Positions 1,132-4,391 of a stretch of DNA of 6,036 bases are shown here, in pieces. Under the pieces are notes generated by a model. The model did not search any database. It had not been told where the DNA came from and saw only the letters and a program-made list of their open reading frames with translations. Location of the stretch: IMG/VR virus record IMGVR_UViG_3300028607_000568, positions 1 through 6,036 of that record. One strand, 5' to 3'. The first letter of the stretch is position 1. Each line of letters begins with the position of its first letter. Position numbers and translations under genes: made by a program.

Positions 1132-1586
1132 AAAAAATACCGACATGGATTACAGCTATAGGTCATTGGTTTTTGCTTTTTGTTCAATTAAGATTTTTCC
1201 ATAATGATATTGTTGATAATACATTTATTAATGAGTCATTAGTTTTACCCAAAGGAATGAAAAGAATGACCTTAGATAATAAATATTGGGTATGTTCTAA
1301 AGAAACTTTTATGAAGTTAGTTAAATGGGTATGGGTAAGTAAAATGAAGTATGTTGGTGATCGTTATGATTGCGATAATTTTGCCTTTACGTTTAAAGCT
1401 TTGGTAGGATTAATATGGGGTTTGAATAATGTGGGGGTGGTTATTGACACTACCGGAGGTCATGCCTATAATATTATTATCTTTGATGATGGTTCATGGG
1501 AACTTTTTGAGCCACAATCAGGGCGTTTTGTTAAGCCGGGAGAACATAAAATGTATACATTTAAGAGAGGACAGGTGATTTTATAA
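1128..1586 (+). CDS. Putative papain/transglutaminase-like cysteine protease (resembles the Marasmius oreades agglutinin C-terminal domain)
   Basis: Motifs YDCDNFA (C82), GHAYN (H112) and FEPQ (E128) occur in the order of a Cys-His-Glu triad. G-rich SD at 1116-1124. Hydrophobic N-terminal stretch. Confidence 0.7.
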   Translation: MKKIPTWITAIGHWFLLFVQLRFFHNDIVDNTFINESLVLPKGMKRMTLDNKYWVCSKETFMKLVKWVWVSKMKYVGDRYDCDNFAFTFKALVGLIWGLNNVGVVIDTTGGHAYNIIIFDDGSWELFEPQSGRFVKPGEHKMYTFKRGQVIL

Positions 1587-1741
1587 TGTATGGAAGTGAT
1601 GAATGCGATTGTAGTGAACCAGCCAAGGGTTCAGAGGAAGAAGAATGTGTTTGTCTCGATTCAGGAATGTGTGAATGCACTGAGGAATTTTGTGAATGTA
1701 CTTTATGCGAGGGGGTAACAGATGACTACAACTACTCATAA
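1586..1741 (+). CDS. 51-aa acidic Cys-rich, metallothionein-like peptide
   Basis: Missing from the ORF track. MYGSDECDCSEPAKGSEEEECVCLDSGMCECTEEFCECTLCEGVTDDYNYS has 9 Cys (four CxC plus one), 16 D/E and 1 K. TAATG overlap with the upstream stop; SD AGGTGA at 1573-1578. Confidence 0.78.
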   Translation: MYGSDECDCSEPAKGSEEEECVCLDSGMCECTEEFCECTLCEGVTDDYNYS

Positions 1742-1961
1742 AATAATAGTTTATACTTCTATTGGTTGAGGCCCATGCATGGCAACCAAGTCTTGGTTGC
1801 GTAAGAGAGGTTATGAGTTTACTGAGTATAATATATCAGAGAATCAAGAATATGCAGATGAGTTACTTAAAAAGGGTTTTAGAGTAACTCCAGTAGTTAT
1901 GATAGGAGATACACCGATTGTTGGATATAGTCCAACGATGTTAGAAAAAGCATTGGCATAG
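1722..1961 (+). CDS. Glutaredoxin/NrdH-redoxin-like selenoprotein, 79 aa, UGPC active site (TGA 1767-1769 read as Sec)
   Basis: Reads MTTTTHKIIVYTSIG-(TGA)-GPCMATKSWLRKRGYEFTEYNISEN...GFRVTPVVMIGDTPIVGYSPTMLEKALA. The first beta strand (IIVYT), CxxC position, cis-Pro motif (TP) and IVG(Y/F) of the Grx fold are all present. SD GAGGGGGT at 1709-1716 precedes ATG1722. The ORF-track start at 1779 lacks the active site and has no convincing SD. Confidence 0.88.
1779..1802 (+). promoter_or_regulatory. Candidate bacterial-type SECIS hairpin
   Basis: GCAACCAA (1782-1789) pairs perfectly with TTGGTTGC (1793-1800) around the loop GTC, which starts with G and has 20 nt between it and the UGA. The stem can extend via U1780-G1801 and A1779-U1802 with G1781 bulged. 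Confidence 0.72.
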
Positions 1962-2417: not shown

Positions 2418-4391
2418 ATGAAACTATCAGAATATTTACCAGATGTGCCAGTATTAGCACAACAAATGACTAGTTTGAATAATCAGATTGATCTGATGCA
2501 GTTGATGAAAGCAAGTGGGGGGGCAGAGACAGCTTCTGCGCCTATGATTGGATTAGATCATGTAGTTAATACATGGGTTCGCCATCAAATGGCATATAGG
2601 CAACAACTAGTACAAGATTTACAAACAATCTGTATGTCAGTACAGGAAATACGTTCCCCATTAAATCACATTACGTCGGAAGTATTTCGGAGAGGCTTGG
2701 TATGGGAAGCTAAGACTGATGATCCAGATACCGAAACAAAAGAAACGTTAGAAAAGTTCATGAAAAATTGTAATTCTTTCTCCCAAAGTTTGGAAGAAGT
2801 ACTAAGACAATTCCATTTTGATTTAAATTCAATTGATGATGCGTTCTTATATTTGGCTAAGGAGTATTATAGTGATGGTGAAACATTGCGCTCTAAAGTT
2901 AAAGAAATCAGACGGCTTAATCCAGCCTTGGTCGAGTTCGATCTTGATCAGGCTGGCTTACCTAAGAACTCGCATTTTATATGCCCACTCCATAGAGAAG
3001 AAGTCAATGAAGCACCGGGAGGTTGCCAAGACCCCGATTGCAAACGGGAATTGCAACCCGTTATGTACAAATACTACCATAGGAACCAGCATGTCTACTT
3101 GTTGGAACATGAAGTTATCCACGTTTCTAAGTTTTCCCCTTCGGAAACTTATGGTTGGAGTCCAATACTTACGGTTTTTGAAAAAGGATTAACGCTTATA
3201 GGAATGGATAAAAATCTTTATAGGTATTTCTTTGAACGAAAAATGCCTGCATCAATGATTATGGTCACTACAGATGATCCAGAAAGTCTTAGACGTGAAC
3301 GTGAACATATTGCTGCACAGACTAAGATTGATCCCAATTTTATTCCTATGGTTGCTGTATCAGCCCGTAGTCAACGAGGTCGCGTAGACCTTGTGCGTCT
3401 TTTTCATACATTACAAGAGATGGATTATCTTCCAGTTAGGGAAGAGATACGTGAACGAATTGCAGCTATGTGGGGAGTTACTCCCGCATGGCAAGGCGCA
3501 CCAGAAGCATTTGGGGGGCTTTCTACACAAACACAGCAATTAGTTGTAATGAGTCGAGTAGTCGAGTCTGATCAACGCCTTATACAACAGAAAATTATTC
3601 CTGCTATTTTAGAAGCTTTTGGTGTTGATGATTGGGACTTGAAGTTGCCAAATCCAGAGGAGAAGGCAGAGGCCACTAAGGTTAGTTTCTTACAGCAACG
3701 AGCGCAGATAATGCAAACGATGGCACAACTTGGTTTTATGTTTACATTAAAAGAAGAAGGGGTTGCTATGCAAGACGCTGAATTCGTTATTTCTGGTGAA
3801 ATGGTTCCGAATGCTCAAATGCAAGCGGAACAACAAGCTATGCAATTAGCCCAACAAGAACAGCAATTCAAGATGCAAGAACAACAACAGCAGATGCAAG
3901 AACAACAAATGGGAGCCGCTACTGGTGGTGGTGAAGAACTACCCGCTGGCCCTGAAGGTGGGGCCATCCAAGCAATGCTTAAAGCTGAAGGGAAATTTAA
4001 TGGGCGCACTGGTGGAAGAACTCCTGATTGGCAGGACAAAGCCCCGAACGAAGAACGGGACATTGATGAATATGCAGAAGCACGAGCGCATAAAGCAGAG
4101 AATAGAAATTGGGGTATTAAAGATATTGGAGGAGGTCATCCCATCAATAAGACATGGATGGGAGATTTAATGCAGAAAGGTTTTACGAGTCCTGTAATTA
4201 AAGAAGTAAATTCAGATGGGTCTAAACTTTGGTTTTTACAGAATGGCATAGACTTTGTTGCTGATTTAGGGCCAGCCGGTGTTTTAAGTATTGAGAAAGC
4301 AACCTTTTCAAATGCTATTCCGCAACATTCTAAGACTCCTATGGACACTACACCCTCTACAATAGATATAACTGATGAGGATGATAGTTAA
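2418..4391 (+). CDS. Phage portal protein, HK97-family-like, with a putative Zn-binding insertion and a long Q-rich C-terminal extension
   Basis: Portal-like motifs appear in the expected order: DLNSIDDAFLY; KEIRRLNPALV; EVIHVSKFSPSETYGWSPI; YFFERKMPASMI; EMDYLPVREEIRERIAAMWGVTP (compare D/E-M-x-F...IARAFGVPP); QQKIIPAIL. Confidence 0.85.
   Translation: MKLSEYLPDVPVLAQQMTSLNNQIDLMQLMKASGGAETASAPMIGLDHVVNTWVRHQMAYRQQLVQDLQTICMSVQEIRSPLNHITSEVFRRGLVWEAKTDDPDTETKETLEKFMKNCNSFSQSLEEVLRQFHFDLNSIDDAFLYLAKEYYSDGETLRSKVKEIRRLNPALVEFDLDQAGLPKNSHFICPLHREEVNEAPGGCQDPDCKRELQPVMYKYYHRNQHVYLLEHEVIHVSKFSPSETYGWSPILTVFEKGLTLIGMDKNLYRYFFERKMPASMIMVTTDDPESLRREREHIAAQTKIDPNFIPMVAVSARSQRGRVDLVRLFHTLQEMDYLPVREEIRERIAAMWGVTPAWQGAPEAFGGLSTQTQQLVVMSRVVESDQRLIQQKIIPAILEAFGVDDWDLKLPNPEEKAEATKVSFLQQRAQIMQTMAQLGFMFTLKEEGVAMQDAEFVISGEMVPNAQMQAEQQAMQLAQQEQQFKMQEQQQQMQEQQMGAATGGGEELPAGPEGGAIQAMLKAEGKFNGRTGGRTPDWQDKAPNEERDIDEYAEARAHKAENRNWGIKDIGGGHPINKTWMGDLMQKGFTSPVIKEVNSDGSKLWFLQNGIDFVADLGPAGVLSIEKATFSNAIPQHSKTPMDTTPSTIDITDEDDS
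3816..3911 (+). repeat. Gln-rich low-complexity coding tract with a 17-nt direct repeat at 21-nt period
   Basis: Encodes QMQAEQQAMQLAQQEQQFKMQEQQQQMQEQQM. AGATGCAAGAACAACAA occurs at 3871-3887 and 3892-3908. Confidence 0.85.

Follow-up and report, generated by a model that had tools for sequence, protein, structure and literature searches.

A nine-cysteine acidic viral peptide linked to a putative selenocysteine redoxin, a candidate metal-thiolate module

The stretch of DNA analyzed here, hereafter the window, is the entire 6,036-bp contig IMGVR_UViG_3300028607_000568. It contains, in this order, the end of a structural-looking gene (79–459), a membrane protein, an FdxA-type ferredoxin (752–1048), a 28-amino acid (aa) hydrophobic open reading frame (ORF), a protein of the PF18022 family (1128–1586), a small acidic peptide rich in cysteine, a NrdH/glutaredoxin-like redoxin with an in-frame TGA codon, a 147-aa acidic protein and a portal protein (2418–4391). 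The peptide and its relation to the redoxin are the subject of this report, and the features of both genes are collected in Table 1. Labels of the type L029, L052 or L115 designate related viral loci or contigs that were compared with the window.

The peptide of 51 aa comprises nine Cys (18%), 16 Asp or Glu, a single basic residue (one Lys), four aromatic residues and no His, with a net charge of about −15 and almost no hydrophobic residues. Its cysteines follow the spacing CxC-x11-CxC-x5-CxC-x4-CxC-x2-C and form the motifs CDC, CVC, CEC and CECxxC. The gene is coupled to both of its neighbors: its ATG (1586–1588) shares one A with the TAA stop codon of the upstream ORF (1584–1586), generating a TAATG junction, and its last 20 nucleotides (nt; 1722–1741) are common to the start of the redoxin gene (ATG at 1722–1724), whose Shine-Dalgarno sequence is located within the peptide gene. 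On composition, motifs, junction and overlap, a preliminary description made from the sequence of the window was accurate. It had also called the peptide unannotated, which does not hold everywhere: the ENA and JGI gene callers had detected the ORF, though only as a hypothetical protein. Purine runs similar to Shine-Dalgarno sequences were also found upstream of the peptide homologues in L029, L031, L033 and L115. A perfect sigma-70 consensus promoter lies inside the coding region of the upstream gene; its chance expectation is 0.01 per window, and a match of this quality was reached in 1 of 200 shuffles. The promoter is also present in L108, which belongs to the same lineage, and is not found upstream of the peptide in other lineages. 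Judging from its sequence and position, it is possible that it is dedicated to the peptide-redoxin pair in the lineage of the window.

Table 1. Features of the peptide and redoxin genes in the window, and loci of related or associated cysteine-rich proteins
Feature	Position	Strand	Remarks
Sigma-70 consensus promoter, TTGACA-17-TATAAT	1444..1472	+	Inside coding region of upstream gene, 114 nt before peptide ATG; 12/12 matches
Shine-Dalgarno of peptide gene, AGGTGA	1573..1578	+	7 nt before ATG; read from sequence
Nine-cysteine acidic peptide gene	1586..1741	+	51 aa; conserved; in-frame dN/dS 0.07–0.17; 9 invariant Cys
Shine-Dalgarno of redoxin gene, GAGGGGG	1709..1715	+	Within peptide ORF, 6 nt before ATG at 1722; read from sequence
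NrdH/glutaredoxin-like redoxin	1722..1961	+	PF00462, E = 7.9e-10; NrdH TIGR02194, 1.5e-13 (piece after TGA)
In-frame TGA, presumed selenocysteine codon	1767..1769	+	Redoxin codon 16, in place of first Cys of CxxC (U-G-P-C)
SECIS-like hairpin, GCAACCAAG-T-CTTGGTTGC	1782..1800	+	12 nt after TGA; resembles bacterial-type SECIS
Long-form loci (13–14 Cys)	L002:4003-4197, L009:2401-2589, L011:4250-4441, L013:4142-4351, L126-L129, also L011-15, L022		
Basic 4-Cys protein loci	L052:666-806, L036:2873-2980, L048:5164-5295, L009:2137-2385		

Conservation of the peptide was analyzed in related contigs gathered by portal- and neighbor-based scans of IMG/VR, which were then searched with the peptide by tblastn. 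Homologues with all nine cysteines were recovered. In comparisons with L029, L031 and L033, for which the synonymous divergence (dS) was about 1 or more, the ratio of nonsynonymous to synonymous substitution rates (dN/dS) was 0.07–0.17 in the frame of the peptide versus 0.8–2.3 in the other two frames. When 24 distinct peptide sequences were aligned, the nine Cys columns were invariant, while the 41 other well-occupied columns averaged 64% identity; besides the cysteines, only M1, G3, D8, E11 and G15 were invariant. The family signature is CxC-x10-12-CxC-x5-7-CxC-x3-4-CxC-x2-C, and a single exception was noted, a member of one peptide cluster, on a single contig, with Phe at the second Cys. 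Each of the nine Cys codons was seen as both TGT and TGC among homologues, which shows that selection acts on the amino acid. The preliminary description had held that loss of the ORF or of its Cys pattern in related genomes would speak against the peptide; both are conserved, with purifying selection confined to the frame of the peptide itself. Its shortness and the lack of a family match could fit an ORF that arose by chance, or a leader translated only to regulate the redoxin, but such a non-functional reading is hardly credible in view of the frame-specific purifying selection, the invariant cysteines with synonymous codon changes, and the retention of the peptide on two unrelated phage backbones and also in fused form (see below). 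On this evidence ORF 1586–1741 can be regarded as a real gene with near certainty.

The distribution of the peptide was surveyed in large protein collections. A full HMMER pass through 1.84 billion representative proteins identified three peptide clusters at E < 0.001, and a word-indexed search of 5.8 billion proteins added one more sequence. The peptide was found in 7 IMG/VR contigs, at five loci in a metagenome scan and, by cluster look-up, on about 130 contigs, for which the source gives only the name hypothetical protein. The record names inspected were marine (Tara Oceans and others). No copy was present among 185,579 bacterial and archaeal species genomes, a megablast of the whole window against cultured phages gave no match, and no Pfam, PHROG or NCBIfam family matched the peptide. 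As judged from these searches, the family is narrow and restricted to viruses.

The partner gene encodes a redoxin with the marks of a selenoprotein. Of the 33 redoxin rows listed, in which loci fetched twice count twice, 26 carry the TGA at the equivalent codon, and it aligns with Cys in homologues: the more distant redoxins of L054–56, L091–92 and L102 carry TGT or TGC at this position (CAPC/CSPC). In the L054, L091 and L102 group, this Cys-form redoxin directly follows a ribonucleotide reductase (RNR) gene. The hairpin after the TGA, which resembles a selenocysteine insertion sequence (SECIS), recurs in 16 TGA-form sequences, where pairing holds for 90.6% of cells and compensatory changes affect two pairs. 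By contrast, three Cys-form homologues have lost the stem and use different synonymous codons (ACG/ACT AAA) for identical residues; the Lys codon of the hairpin is always AAG in TGA forms and AAA in Cys forms. An Rfam scan of the window matched no SECIS family, and neither a tRNA for selenocysteine (Sec) nor any other tRNA was found in 17 related loci. The alternation of TGA and Cys, together with a hairpin confined to the TGA forms, is the classical signature of bacterial selenoproteins. The label selenoredoxin, used in the preliminary description, is therefore reasonable, and the redoxin looks like a phage-encoded selenoprotein of the bacterial type. Phages and viruses are absent from a 2026 review of prokaryotic selenoproteomes, and nothing relevant was found in the literature on phage metallothioneins or phage Sec-glutaredoxins.

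Linkage of the two genes was assessed in ten tabulated sequence types of the peptide, here called the short form to distinguish it from the longer proteins described below. In nine of the ten, the peptide gene immediately precedes the TGA-redoxin. The redoxin ATG lies within the 3′ end of the peptide gene in the window and L108, L031, L029, L033, L052/L125, L116–120 and L124, with overlaps of 20, 11, 11, 11, 17, 17 and 8 nt, respectively. The overlap sequence and the relative frame vary among lineages, the redoxin being in frame +1 with respect to the peptide in the window and in L031 and in frame +2 in L052. Since the overlap sequence differs between lineages, what is conserved is the coupling and not a particular sequence. 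Production of a fusion protein by programmed frameshifting in the window was considered and discarded, because the relative frames differ and because every redoxin starts at an ATG of its own, preceded in the window by a Shine-Dalgarno sequence.

A true fusion exists in other viruses. In L115 and L133–138, the Cys-rich module and the redoxin constitute one frame, in which a three-residue linker leads into the first β-strand of the redoxin; no ATG, GTG or TTG is found between the modules, and only the TGA interrupts the frame. The fused form occurs on 15 contigs, of which the seven that were read came from separate assemblies. Their replication module includes a T7-like family A DNA polymerase (DNA-polA), and their phage backbone is not that of the portal lineage to which the window belongs. 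By the 'Rosetta stone' argument, the existence of separate coupled genes in one lineage and of a fused gene in another argues for a joint function. Linkage to the redoxin is thus stronger than the adjacency noted initially, the overlap being kept in every lineage while its sequence differs and an in-frame fusion existing elsewhere. The peptide is very probably tied functionally to the redoxin, and the pair has moved as a unit from one phage type to another.

Two further observations concern this pair. In L133, the fused Cys-rich/Sec-redoxin gene (8653–9003) is located three genes upstream of the T7-like family A DNA polymerase (9555–12002). T7 polymerase takes host thioredoxin as its processivity factor, so that a polymerase-related role of the redoxin is conceivable in the fused lineage. 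In addition, comparison of the window (~1586–1770) with L031:264–448 revealed a recombination boundary near the TGA. Downstream of it, 1 of 78 nt differs and the redoxin piece is 100% identical; upstream of it, the peptide genes differ with a dS of ~1 and 66% protein identity, and the preceding gene is entirely different.

A second viral family of acidic Cys-rich proteins, the long form, consists of proteins of 58–69 aa with 13–14 Cys, in which a nine-Cys block is followed by a C-terminal CxCGGxCxC. It is located in the head-morphogenesis module near the prohead protease. Both forms begin with a nine-Cys block ending in CxCxxC, and they have neighbors in common, namely a basic 4-Cys protein and a 'KD..IT' helical protein. 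In L123, the short form and a long-form-like gene (215–391) are arranged in tandem, and the second protein combines the nine-Cys order of the short form with the C-terminal CxCGGxCxC of the long form. Comparison of profiles by hhalign did not demonstrate homology of the two forms (probability 10%). Taken from sequence and context, these features suggest that short and long forms constitute one superfamily whose core property is independent of the redoxin.

The basic neighbor deserves mention on its own. A small, very basic protein with four Cys (CxC...CxxC, 35–82 aa) recurs directly upstream of the TGA-redoxin or of an acidic Cys-rich protein (Table 1). Its presence brings up the idea that the peptide is an acidic decoy, that is, a DNA mimic, an anti-defense protein or a neutralizer of the basic protein, in which the cysteines would merely provide a structural zinc scaffold. 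The net charge of about −15, the presence/absence variation of the gene and its fast evolution relative to its neighbors (66% identity versus 92% for the portal) would suit such a role, as would the basic 4-Cys protein directly upstream in L052, L009, L011–13 and L127. However, the basic protein is absent from the window, no PHROG family matches the peptide, and the fusion partner is a redoxin and not a nucleic-acid or defense protein, which leaves the decoy very improbable.

Comparisons with known families and folds were carried out to place the peptide. The window peptide matched no Pfam family at E ≤ 0.1 and nothing in NCBIfam. Curated metallothionein (MT) families (PF00131, PF02067, PF02068, PF02069 and others) were considered at their gathering thresholds; the best MT models for the relatives were PF02068 (E = 0.23, with 12.3 bits versus a cut-off of 31.8) and PF00131 (E = 1.5). 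Searches of PDB sequences with a 6-sequence profile and with a long-form profile each gave 0 matches. A 24-sequence profile returned insignificant matches only, to the acidic hinge protein of complex III (E = 0.97) and to PDB chains of MT (E = 2.4–8.8), among them the mammalian MT β-domain (E = 2.4–7.9); in the latter, profile positions 18–41 align without gaps to residues 2–25 of the 30-residue domain with seven Cys in register, again without significance. With regard to the general traits of MTs, the size of 51 aa and the four CxC plus one CxxC motifs are in accordance with them, 18% Cys is at the low end for MTs, and His is absent but four of the 51 residues are aromatic. No His was present in any of the ten tabulated short-form sequences, so that the Cys9His2 ligand set of SmtA/BmtA is lacking, and for this reason the peptide does not belong to the SmtA type. 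In the preliminary description the peptide was taken for a possible new viral metal binder or for a redox substrate of the redoxin next to it. The peptide turned out to be real, virus-specific, redoxin-linked and strictly conserved in its cysteines, while no MT family model recognizes it.

AlphaFold2 gave no confident fold (pLDDT of 52.7 with an 8-sequence alignment and of 47.0 with 24 sequences). A net charge of about −15, nine cysteines and almost no hydrophobic residues imply that the peptide cannot fold on its own, and the low pLDDT agrees with this. Small Cys-rich sequences devoid of a hydrophobic core normally fold around thiophilic metals. On the strength of its Cys pattern, the peptide probably binds metal. 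The segment CxC-x3-4-CxC-x2-C is also similar to the polycopper motif found in fungal Mac1-type factors, and CxCxxC is reminiscent of the As(III) site in ArsR; therefore the metal cannot be named from the sequence.

Combined, these data lead us to favor, tentatively, an explanation in which the peptide forms a metal-thiolate cluster and assists the selenoredoxin as an accessory module or redox-relay partner. It would be a small, acidic, cytoplasmic protein whose fold is probably organized by the nine cysteines around thiophilic metal ions. The number and order of the cysteines (four CxC plus xxC) would fit a trinuclear M3Cys9 cluster, as in the MT β-domain. Peptide and Sec redoxin would be made from one message by coupled translation, probably in roughly equal amounts, whereas in the second lineage one polypeptide contains both, the Cys-rich module preceding the thioredoxin fold. 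Exchange between the selenol/thiol active site of the redoxin and the thiolates of the cluster would switch metal binding and/or serve to dock or to relay electrons to clients; both the stoichiometry of the cluster and the thiol/selenol exchange are inferred. Selenium compounds are known to mobilize zinc from zinc-thiolate sites (PMC8707161).

One candidate client would be a domain rich in Zn and Cys at the C-terminus of the viral class II RNR. A class II RNR with a six-Cys C-terminal zinc domain (CC...CxxCxxC...C) is encoded in L054:3299-5248, L139:6260-8164 and about 55 other loci, and in the sister lineage L139/L140 (contigs of 38–70 kb) it lies ~1.8 kb upstream of the peptide, with capsid genes after the portal. 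The cysteine-rich domain (CRD) of class II RNRs has six Cys, binds Zn and relays electrons, and its reductant has been reported as unknown (PMC5704485). As the Cys-form redoxin directly follows a CRD-type RNR, the NrdH-like protein of these viruses may be the missing reductant. The possibility that the peptide itself is a detached C-terminal domain of RNR was rejected, since NrdJ retains a CRD in cis in the lineage that bears the peptide. A bolder version, which we regard as speculative and rather unlikely, is that peptide and Sec-redoxin constitute a natural two-component 'selenol-catalyzed zinc-thiolate switch', possibly a reductant pathway for CRD-type class II RNRs in infected marine bacteria; in a variant of it, the module would handle selenium or another thiophilic element for the co-translated selenoprotein.

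Several observations weigh against a metal-thiolate partner of the redoxin. Metal binding is a prediction from the Cys pattern. No MT, Pre-SET/CXC, FTR (ferredoxin-thioredoxin reductase) or zinc-finger Pfam model matches the peptide or its relatives, and the match to the MT β-domain (E = 2.4–7.9), not being significant, adds nothing firm. Vertebrate MTs balance their anionic clusters with lysines (PMC8198881), whereas the peptide has 16 Asp or Glu and one Lys. The redoxin occurs without the peptide in many relatives (L034–37, L040, L042–44, L047–49, L074 and L078), and the close relatives L049 and L052 differ in lacking and having the peptide, respectively. In L123, the short-form gene is followed by a second CxC-rich protein and not by the redoxin, and no redoxin lies within 3–5 kb of the 13-Cys long forms, which may be related. 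Finally, a comparison by eye showed no difference in the charge of the basic stretch or helix after the redoxin active site between peptide-linked and peptide-free lineages. Where they lack the peptide, TGA-redoxins stand alone or behind the small basic 4-Cys protein.

Part of this evidence would be accommodated if the peptide were a free-standing viral MT that buffers, stores or detoxifies Zn, Cu or Cd in infected cells, its position next to the redoxin reflecting only a shared accessory cassette. The CxC-rich nine-Cys pattern in (non-significant) register with the MT β-domain, the occurrence of L123 and of the 13-Cys long forms without the redoxin, the indel of the peptide gene between L049 and L052, and the recombination boundary near the TGA can all be read in that way. 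The in-frame fusion to the redoxin in a different phage type, the start-stop overlap kept despite sequence turnover, the linkage to the redoxin in 9 of 10 short-form types, an acidity unlike that of known MTs and the failure of MT models to match point in the opposite direction and render a free MT somewhat improbable. From the gene arrangement, an accessory domain of the redoxin seems to suit the fusion better, and a free MT fits it less well.

The role of the metal itself can also be questioned. Being coupled and fused to a disulfide oxidoreductase, the peptide might be a metal-free thiol/disulfide protein reduced or oxidized by the selenoredoxin, acting as a multi-disulfide substrate, a redox buffer or an electron relay comparable to the C-terminal Cys array of RNR; Cys arrays do relay electrons in class II RNR (PMC5704485). 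However, the cysteines are odd in number (nine) and all invariant, CxC disulfides are strained, a protein of the cytoplasm that lacks a hydrophobic core would have no center around which to fold, and the viral RNR already has a relay domain in cis. A metal-free protein is on these grounds unlikely, and the metal-thiolate module associated with the redoxin is retained as the favored explanation.

The genes flanking the pair provide further context. The FdxA-type ferredoxin is located 540 nt upstream of the peptide in the window, and a ferredoxin is also found in L030. The 28-codon hydrophobic ORF that follows it (1045–1131, + strand) is connected by ATGA overlaps to the ferredoxin stop (1046–1048) and to the next start (1128–1130). 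The proximity of the ferredoxin is compatible with a mini iron-sulfur protein that would connect the phage ferredoxin with the redoxin by electron transfer, in the manner of the [4Fe-4S]/disulfide center of FTR with its CxC ligands, and small acidic Cys-rich proteins are typical of ferredoxins. No FTR or Fe-S Pfam model matches, however, no ferredoxin is found near the peptide in L139/L140 or in the polA lineage, and in L074 and L078 ferredoxin and redoxin coexist without the peptide, so that an Fe-S relay is quite unlikely.

The gene immediately upstream of the peptide matches PF18022 (Lectin_C_term, E = 3.3e-10) and contains conserved YDCDNFAF and GGHAYN motifs; we take it to have a papain-like fold, in which these motifs would correspond to the papain-like Cys/His pair. 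Its homologues were found in 27 other viral contigs with quite different neighbors. Among 50,697 cultured phage records, the only matches of the portal were haloarchaeal tailed viruses, with 27–30% identity. Marine archaeal 'magroviruses' have been defined on the basis of such a portal pattern (PMC5434244). In conflict with the relatives of the portal, a bacterial host is suggested by the sigma-70 promoter, by the Shine-Dalgarno sites and by a SECIS-like hairpin that lies within coding sequence.

Phage-encoded selenoproteins have hardly been described, and a Sec NrdH-like redoxin with its own dedicated nine-Cys partner, exchanged as a unit among unrelated phage backbones and sometimes fused, adds an uncharacterized protein family to the accessory genes of marine viruses. 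The two proteins, of about 50 and 80 residues, constitute a testable pair. They are a candidate for how redoxins communicate with zinc-thiolate sites, selenium-catalyzed zinc release being so far described only with small molecules in vitro, and may point to the electron donor used by CRD-type class II RNRs. Were the switch reading true, this would be the first biological system with a selenoprotein dedicated to loading, unloading or oxidizing an MT-like cluster. If the peptide binds no metal and ignores the redoxin, it is an ordinary small hypothetical protein.

Among known systems, the vertebrate MT-1/2 β-domain (PDB 2mrt, 1dft and 2mhu; Zn3Cys9 or Cd3Cys9) is similar in having nine Cys as four CxC plus xxC, and these nine cysteines hold a Zn3Cys9 cluster (PMC8198881). 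Like the peptide, it is small, without His and without a hydrophobic core. The peptide differs in its longer first spacer (x10–12), in the N-terminal position of the two remaining cysteines, which are C-terminal in MT, in its lower Cys content (18% versus about 30%) and in its four aromatic residues; unlike MT, it is viral and tied to a redoxin. Within prokaryotes, SmtA/BmtA metallothionein (PF02069) is a small nine-Cys protein with a zinc-finger-like fold, which binds a zinc cluster with the help of two His ligands. The number of cysteines is the same in the peptide, but it lacks His and does not match PF02069. The catalytic subunit of FTR (PF02943), characterized by the motifs CPC-x16-CPC-x8-CHC, likewise has CxC motifs beside a thioredoxin-type client, and a ferredoxin is near in the window. 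By contrast to FTR, the peptide has neither that spacing nor the Pro and His of CPC and CHC, PF02943 does not match it, and its linkage to ferredoxin is inconsistent across lineages.

The remaining two systems involve redox partners. The CRD of NrdJ is a Cys array encoded in the same viral genomes (L139), as well as in L054, L091 and L102, but its six cysteines follow the pattern CC-x(n)-CxxCxxC-x(n)-C, which is different from that of the peptide. Bacterial Trx2 (TrxC) carries an N-terminal zinc finger on a thioredoxin fold, thought to mediate interaction with targets (PMC8615215). The fused form of L115 and L133–138 similarly has a Cys-rich module N-terminal to the thioredoxin fold, whereas the window has a separate overlapping gene. 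Trx2 uses two CxxC motifs for one Zn, unlike the four CxC plus one CxxC of the peptide; its partner domain also differs from the NrdH/glutaredoxin-like selenoprotein found here, and in most lineages the viral module is a separate, translationally coupled protein. By analogy, the peptide may resemble in its role the MT β-domain and, when fused, the zinc finger of Trx2. It is best classed as a putative Cys-rich metal module attached to a thioredoxin-fold enzyme, with a nine-Cys CxC design, an extreme acidity, a restriction to viruses and a selenoprotein partner as its new traits.

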